Virus record (IMG/VR): IMGVR_UViG_3300045125_000168
Span: 62,001-126,000 of that record
Reading direction: 5' to 3' (one strand)
Length of the DNA stretch: 64,000 bases
The position numbers and the translations under genes are program-made. The notes beneath the pieces were generated by a model. It was not told where the DNA came from, searched no databases, and saw only the letters and a program-made list of their open reading frames with translations. Numbering within the stretch: the stretch's first letter is position 1; every line of letters starts with the position of its first letter. Below are positions 30,006 through 45,332 of the stretch, one piece after another.

Positions 30006-31173
30006 TCAATAGCGAAAGCAATTTATAGTACACCAGCGGTCCCAATTTGCATTCCCCCAATCGCCTTGATCCTCTCCCAGACCCATTACCTGATGTCCGG
30101 TCTCGTGGATAATTGTGCCCATCTGAAAGTCTTTTCTTGACTGAATTATGGCACTTTCCTGATAGTGTGCAAATTCAGTTTTTTTCACAGTCCCAGATTG
30201 CCAACCGGACACAGGCCATAATCCGCGAGCATATCCAGCCCTGCCACTATCCGCGTCTGCTGCAAACAACATCATGAAAGCGTTGACCACGTAATTGGGG
30301 GTCCAAGTATTATGAAGAGTGAGAGTTGAAAAATCGAACTGTGTTATTCCCCCCATCTTCGCATACAATTCTCTGATAAGCTCTCGGGACCTGACATACT
30401 CATTTGGTTTTTCTGGATGATTGGAGTCCATAAAATATGAATATGGTTTTGATGAACGGAAATTACCGACTACGACGTGCTGTAAATCAATATCCTTCTG
30501 AAACAAAGCATAACCTCTAAGGTCAGTGGTTGAGTTTCAACGCAGCGTCGAAAACGCTTGTTGTTGTAAAAGCCATGTCGTCGAAATCTACAAGCACAAG
30601 AAGACCGAGAATTTTTTAGCATTTGGAACAGACGTCAGCGTCGGAATTAAAATGGTCCTATCACCATCGATAAGGAGATCCTATGGTTGTTCTCGCACCC
30701 ATTGTTCAGGTGTGGGCTTTTCTGGTGGCAGCATGACTGGACCAAATGCTTGAGCGGAAGTTCTCGCATTTCCACATTCATTTTGAACTAAAATTCTATT
30801 GTACGGCACTGTTAGACACAGGCCGTATTGTGAAACAAATTGAACACGATTCACAGAAAGTCTTTTGATAAGGAATTTCTGCTCCTTGCTTTTACTACAC
30901 GATTTTAGACGAATGATTTGCCCTGGGGTCTTGTTTATAGATTGCAGGCATTTGTTGTTGGTCACGAGTTGCACATAATTGTTATTAGATGGCTTCTGTC
31001 TCACGTATTGACTTGCTTCGCCATCACATGGAATATCCCTAATGAAGTCCGCATCCAAAGACAAACAATTTTTCGACCACTCGTTCTGCAACCTTCCATC
31101 GTCTATTGCTCGTATTTCAGCATACGAAGCACACTCCAAATAATAAGACAAAGATCGTAATTATTTTTTCCAT
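30006..31173 (-). CDS. secreted ricin-B-lectin + zinc metallopeptidase protein (frameshifted)
   Basis: Repeated CL..C..Q-F/Y ricin-like units in 30681-31151; IIHETGHQVMGL HExxH motif in 30006-30506. Confidence 0.6.
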
Positions 31174-31286
31174 AAAAGAAGCCCTCCTTGATAGGACAGC
31201 CTAATCTGATCTAGGGAGAAGATGCGAATGCTCGCCTTTTGTTCCGCCAAGATTGTATTGTGACGTATCTTGCGAGGTCTTTTACA

Positions 31287-31884
31287 ATGGCGATTTTGTC
31301 TATCTGTCCGCCTGGAGTTGTGCTTCCTTTCGCTGGGAATACAACCGTAGTGCCTCAAGGTTGGCTTTTTGTGCAACGGTGCCGAAGTTTCTCGCACTAC
31401 ATACAAAGCTCTATTTGATGTCCTTGGTACGGCGCATGGACAAGGTAATGGAAGTACCACATTCAACCTTCCCGATTTGCGCGGTCGATTTTTGCGTGGC
31501 GTGGACAACGGAGTTGGTCGCGACCCAGACCGAGGTTTGCGCGTCGCAGCAAACACTGGTGGGAATGCGGGTGATGCGGTTGGTTCCGTGCAAGGGATTG
31601 CCACAAGTCTCGCTCCGGGAAATCAAAGCGGGACTAAAAACACGGCAGGTCTTGCGGTATCAACACAAAACAGCACCGTCTCAACGGATGCCATCATGCG
31701 TCCTGCTGGAACCGCAGCCACTACTATCAAGTCAGTTTTAGATGATCGCTGGGGTGGAGGTAGTTTTTACGATTGGGGAGTGATCCCCATTCCGAGTTCC
31801 TCACATAATCATGGTATGAACGTGAGTGGCGACCAAGAGACACGACCTATCAACGTCGGCCTTAATTTTATTATAAAATTCTAA
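31287..31884 (+). CDS. phage tail-collar domain protein 2 (frameshifted)
   Basis: MAILSICPPGVVLPFAG...CNGAEVSRTTYKALF...TFNLPDLRGRFLRG...ETRPINVGLNFIIKF. Confidence 0.9.
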
Positions 31885-35057: not shown

Positions 35058-35798
35058 GACCCTATATATGGGGGTTACTATGGGCACTATCAAAAGCCAA
35101 GCTATCCACCTCGCTGAATCCCTTATGAAAATTGACCGTGTGCGCGTCGAGCACAGGCTGCGAGCCTTTCCAGCCTACTTTCAGGACGCCTCACGGATTT
35201 TAGAGTCCCGTTGGACGGGCTCGAAAGTCTCGTGCCTCTCGTGCGGGGGGCCGACCATTACAGTCCTGTATGACGGGGTGGAAGTCTGCAAATATTGCGG
35301 TGAGGGGGTATAACCATGTGGAAGCTATGCCTGGACTCTCTCTGGGGTTATCTTGAGGACGAGAATTTCTCGGGTGATGAGTACGTCTGGCGTACCGATG
35401 TCACCGATGAGGAGCTTGAGAACATGCCTAGATTCCTCAAGCGGCACCTGCGAGGACGTATCGACCAGTATGCCGTTGCTATCGAGGGCGAAGGGCATAT
35501 TGTCATCCGTCAGGCCCAGTCTGGGAACCCGATCATCATGCTCTACCGGATTGGTGGGTGACCTATGGCTCGCCAATCACAAAAGCACTGCTGGCTCAAA
35601 GGTGTCAAAGAAGTTTGGCTTCAGACTTTTTGGGATGTGTACTGGGTTTCAATTCGATAGCTCTCTCGGTGTGATCTGGCCACTGAATAAAAAATTCCGC
35701 GAATTAAAAGAGATGATTCACGAGGACCAGATAGCCTATGAGGTTGTGCAGATTTATTTCGACGATTATAACCGCACCAGACTCACGGAAAACTAACG

Positions 35799-36427
35799 AT
35801 GAGCTACCTCGATAAAATTCAGCGCATATTGGCCCATCAGCAGGAGATGGACCAAGTGTTTGCCGCAGGTAGAACTCCCTGCTCGAAGCGATGCGAGCGG
35901 CTGACACTACATTCAAGAGCGCCAAAATCCCATCAGCCTACGCTGGGGGTCTACGCGCGTTCATTCCACGGCAAAGCCTCGTCAACCGAGGACGTGGACT
36001 TTCTGCTTTAGCCTCCGACGTGAAGAGTGCAGAGAAAGCTCTACTCGAAGCGGGTTTCCAGAAAAAAGACGTACTCGATTACAGCAAGCCCAAGCGCATG
36101 ATTCACAAGTTTCTCTTTGGGGATCGCGAGGTCGATCTGCTGGTGTTCCCGCAGCACGAGGATTTTCTAAAAGGGGTTATGAGTCGCGCACAAGATGCGA
36201 AGGGTCTAGGCAAGGTGGTGAGCCTTGAAGACCTGATTTTGCTCAAGCTCTTTTCCTTCCGATTGAAAGACAAAGCCCATATCGTCGAAGTCTTGGAGTC
36301 AAAAAGCCAGACATGGACTACATCAAAACGTGGTGTAGCAAGTTTGGTATCCTTGATCGCTACGCTTTCTTGCTTGAAGACCACGGAGAGGCTTGAGCTA
36401 CCATTTTTTCCAAGGTTGACTTTGTGA
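35799..36427 (+). CDS. Pol-beta-superfamily nucleotidyltransferase with MSYLDKIQRILA leader (frameshifted)
   Basis: AYAGGL...STEDVDFLL, EVDLL, VSLEDLILLKL..R.KD. Confidence 0.7.
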
Positions 36428-36643
36428 GTCGTCGCTCCCTGACGATTGCTTGAGGTCACGAATCAAATAGTACAGGTCGTTTTCTTCTTGGGGGCTGAGG
36501 TCGTTGAGGCGGTTCTTAAAGATTTCCTCAACGTCCGTCAGATACCTTTTGTTGCTACCAACCGCGACCCGAAGGGCAACCATAAGGTCGTGGATGCAAC
36601 GGGACGAGGCTTTGACCTCTTGAACTTTTTTGACGTAAGCCAT
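36398..36643 (-). CDS. hypothetical protein with MAYVKKVQEVKA leader
   Basis: AGGAGG RBS; AAGATT 33 nt upstream. Confidence 0.6.
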   Translation of the reverse strand: MAYVKKVQEVKASSRCIHDLMVALRVAVGSNKRYLTDVEEIFKNRLNDLSPQEENDLYYLIRDLKQSSGSDDSQSQPWKKW

Positions 36644-36729
36644 GAGTGGTGTCCTCCTATTCCTATGCTGAATCTTAGGGCAAAGATTATCTGGGGCTGG
36701 GGTTCATCTGAATTGATAGGGGCATTTGA

Positions 36730-37641
36730 ATGCAACGGATTTCGGCCAAGGTAAAAATCAAGGTCACAAAAAAACAACCGATCGCTCCCGTGAAGCTCAT
36801 GCTTCAAGAAAAGATGGATAGCATCCCAGACGATCATGTGATCGATTTTGAGGATGTGAAAAAGGCTTATCCTGCGATTTCTGAAAAATTGAAAGAGATT
36901 TTTTCACGAAGTCTCGACGTATTACCGTTAAAAACTTGAGGGATTTGATTGAGGAGATCTCGCCAGAGGACCAGAAATTCTGGTTGAGCGAGCGTCCTTA
37001 CACGATGAACACCCAAAAGCAACTTAGAGACCCGCAAGTGGTGATTCAATTAAACTTTACGCCAAAAATGTTGAGCGACCTGAAAAAAGAGTCCAGTCAC
37101 TTACAACTACCTAGCCTCGTTGTTTGAAAAACACGCAGGGGGTGCTCATCCCCTCCACAACCAGACTTTTGCTTGGGCAAGGGTTTACAAATTCCCCGAT
37201 ATGTGGGTGATCGAAGAGATCCAATGCGACTATCTTGGGTGGGACAAAGACTTCAAGTATTTGACGGAGAAACAAGAAAAAAATTTGAAGGAATTAAAAG
37301 AGTCGGATCAAAAAGAGGTTAAAGATTTTTTGGCGAAGCACCTGCGTGGTTGGGAAAAGCAATTTCTTGCGACCATTGTTCAAATGGCCCGTGTCGAGAA
37401 AGCCAAAAAAGTTTTGATGTTTGATAGCTCGGAAAAGCAAGGTCAAGGCACCTCACCTTCCAAGCTGAAATGGTTTTATGAAATTATCCCTCGGGATGTA
37501 GGGTTCAAAAAAACTAAGCAGCACGTTCGACAACGGGAGTTCTCGGTATGGGAAAAGGTCGTTGCTAGTTTCATGCAAAGACTAGAAGATCAAATACAAA
37601 TCCAATTAAAACAGCTTTTTTTCTTCTTTTCAAAGGTATAG
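36730..37641 (+). CDS. hypothetical protein with H...W-A-R-V...IEEIQCD motif (frameshifted)
   Basis: Three pieces; the motif resembles the EEIQSD module of phage large polyvalent proteins. Confidence 0.5.
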
Positions 37642-37716: not shown

Positions 37717-38479
37717 TTATACCAAGACCAAGATGGCGGTAACGCCTCTTTGGTATAGGGCAGAGACTGGTGGTTGTTTGGCGTGTTTCTCTCGTCCGAA
37801 GTAGTCTAGCTCTTGCGGTACGAGGTCCACCTGGACCCCCTTGAGTATTTTTTTGAAAAGCAAGACACCCATCCATTCGCTGTTGGTATGTCCTGTCTCG
37901 ATCAAAGCCTTGAAGCCAGAGGTTTTACCGCTTTGGATTTTCTCGCCTATGATGTAGCAATCCGCTCCTGAGGCGAGGGCAAGTTCTGTGACCATACCTC
38001 CAAGACCTGAGCAGATCACCACGCTTTTGATGATGCGGTTTGGTTGATCGCAGTAGGTTTCCCCATCGATAGTTTTCGAGCCAGAAAAACTGTGCGACTT
38101 TTTGCACTAGATCTTGGAAGGGCATAGGGTCGATCTCCCCGTGCCAACCGAGAGTCCCATCGAAGTGTTTGTATGGTGCTTTTAGTTGCAGGTGGTCGCG
38201 CCACTGATCGTTTAGTCCCCCTTCGCAGCAATCTAGCGCAGTGTGGAAGATAAGCTGAGGAACGCTCGTCCTAAAAGGGTGGTGGCTGATTAAGAGGTCG
38301 TAGCCGTTCTTTTGAAAGTAATCGACTACATGCGGTGTTGCGGTCACGCAGTAGAGGACTTTTTTGACGTCTTTATTGTAGTCCTCGATATTGTATTCAC
38401 CATAAGCCTCGCCACGAGTCCAGGCGATTTCTTCAGGGCAGGCGCTTTTTGCTACGCGAATTAAGTCAGCCATTTTCAT
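37717..38479 (-). CDS. NIF3-like dinuclear metal-centre protein (frameshifted)
   Basis: DLLISHHPF, HTALD, GHTNSE. Confidence 0.85.
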
Positions 38480-38584: not shown

Positions 38585-40409
38585 TATCTGTCGCTTGCAA
38601 GCATAGTTTTTAGCTTTCGCAGGCAAGTAGTCGTTAGGTCTTGCACGTCGCGCACGATAATGTGGTCAGGATAGAAATGTTCTAACGGCATTTGACTCAA
38701 TGCCTATACCAACGCACTCGATATTGTCACGGATAAGCTCGCGCACGGCTTTTTTTAGATCAGCGTTGAGGATCGATGAAATGCCATCGGACGCTGGGGT
38801 CCCGTCTGATAGAACAATCATGATCTTACGATTGGCTGGGTGATTTCTTAGCCGTTGACCAAAAAACCGAATAGACTCTCCATCGCAATTAGCACCATCC
38901 GAAAATAGCCTTGCGATAGGCGTGAGATTTCGACTAACGAAGGGTTTGAAAATGTGATGCTGCAATGATTCAAATACCCGGTTGAAAAATGGATAAACTA
39001 TCTACGTCTACCGGATGCGGAATTGTGTATGTGTGAAAACCACCAACCTCGAAATCTATATCTAGCGATGTCAGGGCTTCCGCAAACGTCGCAGCGAGTA
39101 ACTTGGCTGTAATAATTTTCGAGCCCTCCATGGACCCAGACATATCGATCACAAGTTGAATCGCGACTTTGCGGGTTTCCTCACGCACACGGATTTTGAA
39201 CGGTGTGCGATAATTTTTGTCCACGGCAAGGCGCGTCAGGGCTTTGCGGTTGAGAATACCGCGCTCTTGTTCCATCAGGACCCTGCGATTTTCTTTTGCG
39301 ACGAGGATGCGGTCTAGCTCCAGTGCGAGTTTTAAAGCTTGGGGTCGCACCTTTTGCTTGATCGCTTGATAATCGGAATATGTCTCTTTGTACTCATGGA
39401 CTTTATCGAACTCCGTGGTATACGGCACATGCTTACGAGCATCGTCAAACTCTCGCTCTTCTTCGGTTTGTTCAAGTTCAAGGCGCTCTTCGCGCTCTTC
39501 TTCAAAATGCTCGGCTAGTTTCTCGTCCATGAATTGATGGATGTCTATGGGTTTTTGATCTTCGTCTGACTTCCTCATCACGAAGAGCTTCCGAGTTTAA
39601 GGTTCCGTCATATTCGCGGTCGCGTTGCTTTTTGCTCTGCCTTTTTTGTCTCCTGCTCGTCTGCCTTGTCTCCTCTTGGTCTTGGTCTTGGTCTTGGTCT
39701 TGGTCTTGGTCTTGGTCCTCCTCTTGGTCTTGGTCCTCCTCTTGGTCTTGTTCCCCTTGGTCTTGGTCCTCTTGGTCCCCCTGGTCTTGGTCCCCCTGGT
39801 CTTGGTCCTCTTGGTCTTGGTCCTCTTTGTTCTCTTGTTCCTCTTGGGCTCTGTCGATCTCACGCAGAATCCGACCGCAGATATCGATGATGTCGGATGT
39901 GTTTTTGCCGAGCGTAAAGATTTTGCCAGACTGACGACACGGGATGTAAAAGAGGCTTGGTGTCAGGGTCTAGCCTGGGCTTTTCGCCTTGCATAATAGA
40001 CCGCACACCGAGACAGACGCGATTCATGAGAGATATCTCATCCCATTTTTCATAGGGTGATTTTTTTCCACTTCGCGTTCAAAGGCTCTAAATGCAGCTT
40101 AGTGCCTGGAAAAGTCTCCCCTATGACTTTCTCAATCCGGCTATCCTCACAATGATTGGTGAGCCAATGAGTGCAATTTGTTCTGACATCGCCTTAGCAC
40201 GGCAAAGTCGGTGTACAGGACATGGGCTAGTTCATGATCCAGATAGCCCTGGGTGTCGAACAATAGCTCGGCTGGGGCATCAGGGGCCAATGCGGGAAGC
40301 ACAATTTTTTCCCGTCCGTGTATGCCTGGGTGCCCTGAAAGACGACCTGGACATCGTGTTGGCCCGATATCGCCCTCGCTACTTTCTCCAATGATCTTGT
40401 GCCCTTCAT
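38585..40409 (-). CDS. CobT-like VWA-domain protein (frameshifted)
   Basis: VVFQGTQAYTDGK N-terminus, acidic linker, MIDAS motif IDMSGSM, N.DGESI, IVLSDGTP, VGIGI. Confidence 0.85.
39672..39830. repeat. (CTTGGT)n-type tandem repeat encoding the DQDQEE acidic linker of the CobT-like protein
   Basis: Minus strand GACCAA repeats with GAG/GGG inserts. Confidence 0.85.
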
Positions 40410-41143: not shown

Positions 41144-42166
41144 ATGCCAAGAGGCAAGGCTGAGACAAAAGCACCTGTAGCTGCGAAAAAAGCAACAACG
41201 ACTACCAATACCAATACTCTCATGGGTATCGAGTTGCCGGTCAGGACGGGGCTTTCGCCTGCACAACAAAGATTTGTCCCAGCGATTGACGCCAAATATA
41301 GTTTTCCCGGAAATCACCTTCGATGTCGTGAGCGACATCCTAGAAAATCGTTGCGTCCTGACAACAGGCCATGCAGGTACAGGCAAATCCAGTCTATTCG
41401 AGCAGATAGCGGCTCGGATGAATCAACCCTGTGTGCGGCCTGTGATGAATGGGCAAATGACCACCTCAGAGCTTTTGGGTGGCCTCCTGGTGCGAGCAGG
41501 AGAGACGGTTTTCGTCGATGGCACCCTGGTGAGGGCTATGCGTGAAGGGATGTGGGTGATTATCGATGAGATCGATAATGCCGATGCGAATATTTTGTGT
41601 TCGCTCAATACCGTCACAGAACCCGTGACCGAACACAAAAAAGACCGTGATCTGATTCTGAAGGAAAATGAAGGTGAGCTTGTGGTGGCCCACCCTAATT
41701 TCAGAATTTTGGCTACAGCAAACTCGGCTGGGTGCATGGAGCAATTTAGATCTCTTTACCCTGGCCGTAACAGGCTTGATGTGGCTTTTCTCTCGCGCTT
41801 TAGTGTGTATCACATCGACTATCTCCCGGCGGAGCAAGAAAGCGAGATTGTCCAGTCTAAAACAGGAATCCCTGCAAAAATTGCCGCTAACATGGTTATC
41901 GTCGCCAACCAGCTTCGCACTGCCTTTGCCAACGGAGAAATCTCTGCGCCTTGCAGCACACGTCAAATTTTTGAATGGGGTCGCTTGATTAAGCGGCATA
42001 TAGAACGGGCAAAGAGTCAGTTGGATTTTGATGATCTTTCGGATAAAGACCGGGAGAAAACATTGAAATCAATCGTGCAACACGCAGCTTCCCTAGCTCT
42101 TAAAAGCAGGTGAGCTTTGAAGACCAAGAAGTAATTGATCGTCTCATTCTGATGACTTTTGGATAA
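41144..42166 (+). CDS. CobS/MoxR-family AAA+ ATPase (frameshifted)
   Basis: Walker A GHAGTGKS, Walker B IIDEID, HPNFRILATAN, LD.AFLSRF, STR. Confidence 0.9.
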
Positions 42167-43488: not shown

Positions 43489-45332
43489 AAATATGAGATC
43501 TACATTCAAATTATATCATATTGACGGATTTTCGGTTGTCGAGGACGAAGACCAAGGTATGAGTGTGACAAACGATGCAGAAAACGTCGTGCGGGATGTT
43601 CTGCTTACAATATCCAAAAACGAGAGCGATCATATACAGAGACACTCAAGGTAATTGGGATCAACTTTTGTTTGATGCAAAAGGTTTTTACAAAATTTAA
43701 GAGCTTGAACACACGAGATAAGGATCGTGCGCTTTGGCTTGCTCGATCGCTCAGAACTATTGCGCTAGGAGGTTGCAACATGAAATATTTTTTAGTGCCC
43801 CTTAAAGGGCAGGCGCATGCAGGCGAGGCGCCGTTTCCTGTATTTTCTTTACCGTGACGGTGACCGTTGTGTTCCAGATTGGACGTGGGTAACTGATTCA
43901 CTCAAAGGACCAGGAAGGTGCCCCCATTATTTCTAAGAGACAAGGATTGTCCATGATAAATAACCATGGCATGACGTTGACGCAATTTAAAATCGGTGAG
44001 CCGTTTTATACCGCAACGGGCAAATGGATTTGTGTGACGTAGGGACTTATTTCGTCCTTGCGGTCAAAGAATCGTCTTACCAGGATTATGTCACGGGGAG
44101 AACACGGGTGAACTTTTGATTTTCGATCGTTGGGACTTCGGTGGTTGCTATCTTGAACTTCCAGAAGGAGTCTGAATATGTCTCTTTTTATCGCTAAAAT
44201 AAAATCCGAGATAAAGAGATATCATAATATTGTGAATCAAAGGGTTTTGCTTGTGCAACAGGTAGGGAAGCCTGACGCAAGATGCTCATTTAAAGAATTT
44301 TTTCATAATGATGGCTTAACTAAGAAGCAGATAGAAGATATTCGCAGTTTGATGGTTGGTGATTGTATGCATCTCGAAGTCAGGCAAGGCTGGATTAAGA
44401 TCACGAGAGAAAAATGAAACCCAGGCACAAAGCCTGGGTTTCGAGTATTTCTTACTTGAGAAGAAAGGTGGCTTTAACCTTGTACCCGTAGAGTTTAAAC
44501 TCAGCGTTGAGTTGCGGAATGTTTTTTGTCTCAAGGCAAAGAATCGCATCGACGTTCAACCAGTCAAAGTCTTTGATGCCACGGACCTCAAACATATCGC
44601 AACCGGATTCGGTCATGCCCTTGTAGAAAGAAAAAACCGCTCGCTCTCATAGCTACCTTTTTGTCGCAGTTCCTCGATAAAGTCAGTCTTTAGCAGTAAG
44701 TTCGGGACGTCCTTTTCAATCGTAAAACGATTGGTCCCCAGGAGTTGTTTTCGCGTAGCCTTCTACCTTGAAGGATGTTTTTCTTCATCACGAGCAGTCA
44801 CAGAAACGGTGATCGTACTGGATTGCAAGAGTTTATCGCTTTGGCTGCGGATCGAGAACGTACTCGCTGGAGAAACCGATTTCAATCGTTTGCTCTTCAG
44901 GAGCTCACAGTCGGTGCCGAGCGATCTGTTTTTTGAAACGCACCACAAGACGCCACGAAGAATAGAAGACATAATGACGTTAATAGACGAAGCCTCATCT
45001 CTGAAATCTCCCTTTGGTTTTGGTCAGAGTTTGTTTAAGAACCAAGAACAAGGGCTTTGAATTTTAGAACTAGGGAAGATCATTAGAAGGTAGGATAGAC
45101 CGAAGATCCTGATCTTGCGCGGCATTGACATGCTCGACGTTTTGAACGCGCTCATGCAAGGAACCGCACTGATCGAGAAAAGACCGAGCAGCGTCACGCA
45201 TTTCTTTAGCCGATTGCCATAAGAGAAGAGCGAAGACTAGCAGCAAAAAAGTAATTATTCTGTCGATGAAAGGATCATGTGGGTTTCTCGACATCAGATT
45301 CACTACCCCAATCGATTTCAAGTCCACGCCAT

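Follow-up and report, generated by a model that had tools for sequence, protein, structure and literature searches.

What, if anything, joins the genes that lie around a short inverted repeat in the DNA of an uncultured jumbo phage? The DNA analysed here (hereafter the window) is a stretch of 64 kb that corresponds to bases 62001-126000 of a single virus record of 236,430 bp; positions are window positions unless a locus is named. In it, a gene for a nucleotidyltransferase (NTase), an open reading frame (ORF) for a conserved protein of 81 amino acids (ORF81) and a gene for a protein with the motif EEIQCD follow each other, with the palindrome AATCTT-AGGGCA-AAGATT located between the latter two. 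In the original prediction the NTase and the EEIQCD protein were regarded as an island of co-packaged, injected effectors, marked by leader sequences and by back-to-back AAGATT elements. Here we present evidence that the three genes of the interval are probably ordinary accessory genes, unlinked to each other, of an uncultured tailed jumbo phage, and that the indels found in it are most likely assembly error.

The record derives from a JGI metagenome contig of 351,605 bp (3300045125, Ga0494335_066), of which it covers approximately 1760-238189. It is classed as a provirus by IMG/VR and its completeness is estimated by CheckV at 87%. Since its largest ORFs match PHROG head-decoration, tail-fibre and minor-tail families, the record was taken to represent a tailed jumbo phage. 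Neither an integrase (PF00589) nor Terminase_6N was found in the record; possibly the phage extends over more of the contig and the provirus boundary was produced by trimming. When GenBank phages were searched at the nucleotide and protein level, the region, the NTase fragment, a 173-aa piece of the EEIQCD gene and the giant homologue P0036 all remained without a match. Pattern scans of IMG/VR identified no relative with the NTase fragment, the EEIQCD-protein fragment or alignment A2, and no GTDB genome was found when scanned with the same alignment. The longest ORF in the window comprises just 359 aa, which was the first hint of interrupted reading frames.

Such interruptions were identified in both principal genes by comparison with intact homologues. 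A word search with a 178-aa ORF as query yielded intact metagenomic NTase homologues of 183-199 aa (P0002-P0006), to which a later profile search added one of 210 aa (P0160). Over the longest piece that stays in one frame, tblastn finds 49-67% identity between the homologues and the window, and three-frame translation combined with tblastn shows the NTase coding sequence passing through three frames in the order 2-1-2-1-0. DNA alignment with the orthologue at locus L011 placed deletions near 35878/9, 36004/5 and 36298/9 and an insertion near 35954. Since every part of the intact homologues is encoded in the window, 35799-36396 is one gene of 199 aa. When the frame is followed it reads A-Y-A-G-G, 13 residues and D-V-D, as do most intact homologues, the exceptions being P0006, with N-V-D, and P0005, with I-Y-L at the position of D-V-D. 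This reading conforms to hG[GS]-x9-13-D-h-[DE]-h, the catalytic motif expected of minimal Pol-beta NTases. The GG...TEDVD motif noticed in the original prediction is hence present, though split over two frames.

Likewise, the EEIQCD gene is split into ORFs 36730-36939, 36936-37127 and 37120-37641, which together tile the intact homologues P0008-P0011 (284-302 aa, found with the 173-aa ORF as query) end to end. Alignment with the DNA of locus L015 located a deletion near 36899/900, beside a T run, and an insertion near 37082, in an A run. What had been described as a gene of its own, starting at 37120, is the last of three fragments and forms the C-terminal 60% of a gene of approximately 300 aa; the frameshifts had been missed, which made a single gene appear as several fragments with unusual ends.

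All genes that could be compared with either a homologue or a family model are broken (Table 1), and the indel density in the record amounts to approximately 1 per 150-450 bp. The six disruptions in the NTase and EEIQCD genes are all ±1 indels, with neither nonsense substitutions nor large deletions, and homopolymer runs adjoin at least both indels of the EEIQCD gene. Apart from the indels, both genes have their full length, with nothing truncated. In the DNA alignments, differences from homologues fall on the three codon positions as 28/15/103 for the NTase gene and as 75/51/160 for the EEIQCD gene, and this third-position bias runs along the whole of both genes, also downstream of every shift. 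The combination of ±1 indels only and third-position bias fits an under-polished assembly or extremely recent damage, not long-term decay. An under-polished long-read assembly typically gives such an indel density without other decay, and assembly error is the most likely origin of the indels. Programmed frameshifting and another genetic code were considered and rejected, since the shifts occur in both directions, at unrelated sites and in every gene checked. Fold predictions and searches were performed with intact natural homologues, using neither an altered code nor joined sequences.

The original prediction of a Pol-beta-type NTase was borne out. The protein is a predicted small minimal nucleotidyltransferase of the Pol-beta superfamily, of the DUF6036/DUF2204/AbiEii kind. 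Its homologues match the Pfam families DUF6036 (E = 1.7e-4), NTP_transf_5 and DUF2204 below threshold, with 21.9 bits against a gathering cut-off of 23.6 for PF19502 and 13.6 against 20.3 for PF09970; the window fragment alone scores 12.3 bits. In a database of 5.8 billion sequences the family profile reaches PF19502, PF09970 and PF08843 proteins with E-values of 7e-7 to 3e-4, and hhalign aligns the family with annotated NTases at 99.5% probability over 163 columns. This alignment pairs GGLARSFHGxxSSTEDVD with GGLAvxFHGxPRxTxDIDF and REIDLLVF with iDLLV, as well as the helices VSLEDLILLKL...RLKDKAH. REVDLLVF of the window is aligned to the invariant D of the remote iDLLV, where P0006 has K, and two to four residues before its D lie D109 and E111, which are invariant in the homologues. 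Scans with PADLOC, PHROGs and NCBIfam yielded no usable result for the NTase family, the EEIQCD family or ORF81, and PDB sequence profiles gave only noise for the former two.

A structure search, suggested in the original prediction for the AbiEii, MenT and MNT families, did find MenT1 among the matches, all at Z < 8 and for a low-confidence AlphaFold model. This model has a predicted local distance difference test score (pLDDT) of 54, with core residues 65-130 at 74-85. Its neighbours are mostly of the NTase fold (Pol mu/lambda, MenT1, JHP933, ANT(2'')-Ia, TM1012 and LnuA), with MenT1 best at Z 7.5 and ANT(2'')-Ia at 7.1; after re-ranking by VIA, subunits of respiratory complex I, which are unrelated, appear between them with similar Z.

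With DUF6036 (PF19502) and DUF2204 (PF09970) the NTase shares its size class of approximately 160-200 aa, the motif GG-x-A-x3-(H/Y)G-x-x-R/S-x-T-x-D-h-D, the acidic strand hDLLV and the C-terminal helix pair VSLEDLIxLKL...R-x-KD-x-A. It differs from them in being phage-borne, in having an additional N-terminal helix of approximately 21 residues and in its Pfam score below the cut-off. We know of no biochemically defined substrate for PF19502, PF09970 or PF08843. ANT(2'') and LnuA are small-molecule adenylyltransferases. With MenT1 and AbiEii the NTase shares the type of catalytic motif, and its remote relatives carry PF08843; MenT1 is its best small-protein structural match (8rr5, Z 7.5, root-mean-square deviation 3.4 over 113 residues), and the low-confidence model gives a template modelling (TM) score of 0.46-0.49 with 8an5_B of the same group. 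Unlike MenT1 and AbiEii, the NTase has no conserved antitoxin gene beside it and no direct PF08843 or PADLOC match. MenT toxins extend tRNA acceptor ends (PMC10435456, PMC11541572).

Since the G-G...D-x-D motif and the following acidic strand are intact, the NTase is probably active, and it is probably made as an active enzyme in the infected cell. There its substrate, which would receive a nucleoside monophosphate from a nucleoside triphosphate, could be a protein, a small molecule or the 3' end of an RNA. A role directed at RNA or tRNA ends or against defence systems is our leading guess, tentative as it is; it comes from the RNA-repair cassette beside the NTase homologue in locus L009. In L009 and L010 the 199-aa homologue P0006 comes after Hen1, Pnkp and SIR2, all in the same direction, being the fourth gene of a run that resembles the bacterial Pnkp-Hen1 cassette and is found in one lineage only. 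Unlike this context, the phage of the window has no such cassette by its NTase gene, and a weak Pnkp-like match lies approximately 26 kb away. The Hen1 - Pnkp - SIR2 - NTase run (L009:5165-10600, L010:2251-7686) adjoins a 1,856-aa protein with Ig-like repeats.

The leader ascribed to the NTase corresponds to its N-terminal helix. The hhalign match with remote NTases starts at residue 22; residues 3-20 are predicted as a helix by the model at low confidence. The helix is kept in P0003-P0006, is different in P0160 and is absent from the remote NTases, hence it is limited to its own subfamily. When all six frames of the 236-kb genome were searched with the NTase N-terminus as query, it matched only itself (next best E = 1.0), and the tail at 37.6 kb, which had been taken as a second copy, is not even among the weakest matches of this search. 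As far as can be judged from these sequences, the supposed leader is a subfamily-specific N-terminal extension and not a shared targeting sequence. Of the second leader only the letters stood: VVASFMQRL is encoded near 37560-37590, in a variable C-terminal tail without likeness to the NTase N-terminus. Homologues of the EEIQCD protein stop 2-25 residues past a conserved W-x-K-V/A-L/V-A (W-E-K-V-V-A in the window), with unrelated tails.

The EEIQCD motif itself was correctly located; its Cys is Ser in 40 of the 45 members of the family alignment, in which Q97, H141, P142, W150, R152, E164, Q166, D168 and Y251 are invariant. A model made from this 45-sequence alignment has pLDDT 84. When its residues 80-283, approximately, were compared by VIA with 48,161 chains, the 50 best all had the GNAT fold, with 95-127 residues aligned and Z 7.5-9.8 (best 9.8 over 123 residues). 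Foldseek and the atlas agree on this fold, and an atlas search by features returned, at 0.82-0.84, only unnamed viral clusters. The closest GNAT superfamily structures are superposed with Z 9.8 (3lod) and 9.5 (1y9k); AtaT (6gtp), TacT2 and the anti-CRISPR AcrVA5 follow with 7.9, 7.8 and 7.7. AtaT and TacT are tRNA-acetylating toxins. The C-terminal Y-x3-P-(R/K)-x2-G-F also resembles the Y...GF end of GNATs. Unlike GNATs, the protein lacks the coenzyme A (CoA) loop, has no match with the Acetyltransf Pfam model, shows approximately 10% sequence identity and carries both an extra N-terminal domain of approximately 80 residues and an insertion of two helices and approximately 40 residues, which in the model follows the E-x-Q-S-D strand. 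The strand in the beta4 position ends in the invariant E-x-Q-S-D instead of the CoA loop, and a regular expression for Q/R-x-x-G-x-G/A matched four times in the alignment of 45 members, each time singly at a scattered place and never in a conserved column.

No Pfam, PHROG or NCBIfam model covers the GNAT-like domain. The Acetyltransf/GNAT model of Pfam did not match 21 family members even with E-values up to 0.001-1, and a Pfam scan of 17 larger members, among proteins of 600-2,200 aa, put no model over this domain. The JGI label 'phosphopantetheinyl transferase' on P0009 was discarded, being without Pfam support. An exhaustive profile search identified 238 cluster representatives at E ≤ 0.001, among them stand-alone proteins of approximately 300 aa and proteins of 600-2,200 aa that carry the domain internally or at the C-terminus. 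Going by the model, the EEIQCD protein is a GNAT-like fold protein that is not filed as an acetyltransferase. It would act as a transferase-type enzyme or as a module that binds substrate, with a non-canonical donor whose site would be centred on E-x-Q-S-D, H-P and W-x-R within the signature H-P...W-x-R...E-x-Q-S-D...Y. This unnamed family is the only, mildly, novel item of the interval.

A second stand-alone GNAT-like paralogue is encoded in the same phage outside the window (locus L017:3014-3862; Table 1). Its identity to the window copy, judged by its match with P0008, is approximately 28%, and it is most closely related to P0020, at 48%. LRV-repeat proteins of 1,862-1,894 aa that end in an EEIQSD/GNAT-like domain were observed at L021:6874-13589, at L022:2960-9918 and on an SRR23086399 contig. 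In these three independent, uncultured phage-like contigs the giant gene directly follows an mCpol (PF18182) gene, and the pairs sit in long one-strand arrays of unknown ORFs. This arrangement is the basis of a speculative reading, to which we give a rather low probability: the EEIQCD protein would belong to an undescribed enzyme family that has lost the CoA loop and gained a site of H-P, W-x-R, E-x-Q-S-D and Y, forming a new catalytic effector module of phage-host conflict that is possibly delivered on giant proteins.

The inverted repeat lies in an 86-nt spacer between the minus-strand ATG at 36643 and the plus-strand ATG at 36730, 28 nt from one and 42 nt from the other. Its location between divergent starts had been described correctly in the original prediction; its interpretation as a pair of AAGATT signals found no support. 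The window contains 46 copies of AAGATT where 59 would be expected and the genome 188 where 182 would be expected, and no extended form is enriched. With at most one mismatch allowed, there are two inverted repeats of the form 6+6+6, compared with an expectation of 0.53, and at least as many were seen in 11 of 100 shuffles. The spacer does not fold better than its shuffles (z = 0.27) and a consensus scan identified no sigma-70-like promoter in it. By eye, 36685-36690 reads GATAAT on the minus strand and GATTAT on the plus strand, a candidate element for either direction. We take the repeat for an isolated palindrome with arms of 6 bp in the divergent promoter spacer, probably a chance occurrence.

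Nor are the genes linked. ORF81 converges with the NTase gene, with 1 nt between the stop codons, and diverges from the GNAT-like gene. Library scans gave no family match for it, and its homologue in L018 and L019, 59% identical, has a different gene context. In none of the relatives found (L009-L015) are the NTase and GNAT-like genes neighbours. The NTase homologue in L011 sits among small ORFs whose homologues scatter over the window's genome, and the match of L011:2-292 with the gene upstream of the NTase covers window positions 35595-35642 and 35647-35766. GNAT-like homologues follow a 1,324-aa ORF in L012 and L013, ORFs of 429 and 441 aa in L014 and another same-strand gene in L015; the window's genome has no homologue of the 1,324-aa protein. 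The interval is surrounded by a Lar-like gene, NIF3, a CobT-VWA gene and a CobS-like AAA_5 gene. This context and the absence of linkage give no sign of the effector island that had been proposed.

These observations bear on the alternatives. That the NTase and the EEIQCD protein are packaged in the virion and injected, with a common leader and a shared back-to-back AAGATT promoter element, is very improbable. It is true that the NTase was identified correctly and that its subfamily has an extra N-terminal helix, that the GNAT-like domain ends giant proteins in phage-like one-strand arrays and that tail-collar and lectin ORFs lie approximately 4-5 kb upstream; some ejected phage proteins do have a giant-protein architecture. 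Against this, the helix is common to no other gene nor to the 37.6-kb tail, leaving the two genes without a shared N-terminal sequence and the co-packaging proposal without support, and the supposed second leader is C-terminal and not conserved. Moreover, the NTase gene, convergent with ORF81, is not driven from the palindrome, which only ORF81 and the GNAT-like gene flank; AAGATT is not enriched, the two genes are not neighbours in L009-L015, and the nearest neighbours are the NIF3, CobT/CobS-like and Lar-like genes, not head genes. Slightly less improbable is that the NTase acts as the toxin in a phage-borne pair of the toxin-antitoxin or abortive-infection type, AbiEii/MenT-like or MNT-HEPN-like, and has a small neighbour as partner. 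MenT1 among its closest structural matches and PF08843 AbiEii on its remote relatives suggest this, as does a small ORF that ends 3 nt before the NTase start in the window, another one overlapping the start in L011. The upstream partner varies, however: the window has a 77-aa gene, L011 an unrelated ORF of 71 aa and L009 SIR2. Moreover, no PADLOC model matches, and neither a HEPN nor an AbiEi family was found on the neighbours scanned.

The frameshifts could also be real, the record then being a decaying prophage in which the NTase and GNAT-like genes are pseudogenes. The provirus classification of a record cut from a 351,605-bp contig and the disruption of every checkable gene agree with this, yet we consider it unlikely: the third-position bias persists past every shift, six ±1 indels are accompanied by no nonsense substitutions and no large deletions, no integrase match is found in the record, and approximately one indel per 150-450 bp without other decay is the pattern given by an under-polished long-read assembly. 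Compatible with the explanation by ordinary accessory genes, and somewhat less unlikely, is that ORF81 and the GNAT-like gene are co-regulated through the inverted repeat, which would serve as an operator or as an overlapping -10 region. Its short distances from both flanking ATGs (28 and 42 nt) and the GATAAT/GATTAT hexamer at 36685-36690 speak for such a function; against it are the empty promoter scan of the spacer, a repeat count within chance expectation and the other contexts in which orthologues of the flanking genes sit.

Ordinary, unlinked accessory genes with assembly-derived indels remain the likely explanation, and several points weigh against it. All Pfam matches of the NTase remain below the gathering score, its model is poor (pLDDT 54, five sequences) and the third acidic residue, the D in REVDLL, is K in P0006. 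The hhalign test is not independent, since the remote set was drawn from matches of the query profile. For the GNAT-like protein, Z values of 8-10 are barely above the background of 7-8 stated for VIA. The catalytic activities and substrates of both proteins are what we infer, as is the artefact origin of the indels, and the IMG/VR provirus class would also fit real decay.

Table 1. Features of the interval and its surroundings, with window positions except for the second paralogue.
Feature	Position	Strand	Remarks
Ricin-type lectin ORF and phage tail-collar ORF	30681-31884	- (lectin), + (tail-collar)	approximately 4-5 kb upstream of the NTase
Cys-rich ORF, 103 aa	34645-34956	+	weak precomputed Pfam match Lar_restr_allev (restriction alleviation) in the JGI gene table
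Small upstream gene, approximately 77 aa	35565-35796	+	one frameshift; L011:2-292 matches two frames
NTase gene, 199 aa	35799-36396	+	stop TGA 36394-36396; broken four times by single-base indels
NTase N-terminal helix, approximately 21 residues	35799-35865	+	outside the shared core; 'leader' of the original prediction
NTase catalytic motif G-G-x13-D-V-D	35945-35999	+	GGLARSFHGKASSTEDVD once the frame is followed; split by an extra base near 35954
ORF81, conserved protein of 81 aa	36398-36643	-	function unassigned; ribosome site GGAGGA 8 nt before the ATG
Inverted repeat AATCTT-AGGGCA-AAGATT	36671-36688	.	6-bp arms with one G-C pair, in spacer 36644-36729
GNAT-like (EEIQCD) gene, approximately 300 aa	36730-37641	+	small N-terminal domain and GNAT-like fold domain; broken twice by single-base indels
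EEIQCD	37213-37230	+	signature (D/E)-E-x-Q-S-D; predicted core beta-strand (model strand 159-166)
Variable C-terminal tail	37560-37641	+	VVASFMQRLEDQIQIQLKQLFFFFSKV; 'second leader-like copy' of the original prediction
NIF3	37717-38479	-	three pieces
CobT-VWA gene	38666-39581	-	frames split
CobS-like AAA_5/CbbQ_C gene	41274-42113
DUF6744 ORF	42623-43096
Gene at approximately 43.5 kb	43493-43688		split over frames
Second GNAT-like paralogue	G000:C1:167013-167861	-	frameshifted too

Some further observations were made along the way. At L012:4145-8984 the 1,324-aa ORF ends 10 nt before the GNAT-like gene; P0012 (1,127 aa) unites homologous parts in one protein, its N-terminal part being homologous to the 1,324-aa protein, and the separate and the fused arrangement thus resemble a Rosetta-stone pair. 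The phage-like contigs L012 and L013, which carry the GNAT-like homologue P0009, also contain a TnpB-like gene (OrfB_IS605 / Cas12f1-like_TNB) on the minus strand, at L012:1083-2264 and L013:2954-4141, near CsrA and SLT genes. By the CobT-like gene of the window, 39671-39847 forms an imperfect tandem array of TCTTGG units with periods of 6, 15 and 39, which reads Lys/Thr/Arg-rich on the minus strand. The sole tRNA found in the window is a tRNA-Ser (GCT), at 893-981 on the minus strand.

The record contains approximately one frameshift per few hundred bases, and the window's remaining short ORFs and fragments are probably similar artefacts. Unless there is proof to the contrary, an assembly artefact should be assumed wherever the window shows a short ORF, a fragment, an unusual N- or C-terminus or an apparent leader. 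For the families concerned, the NTase would add a phage-borne branch to the uncharacterised DUF6036/DUF2204 nucleotidyltransferases, and the homologue beside Pnkp, Hen1 and SIR2 makes a role at RNA ends or in anti-defence worth a simple test. The GNAT-like family, with its 238 representatives, may serve as a cheap target for structure determination and a cofactor screen.

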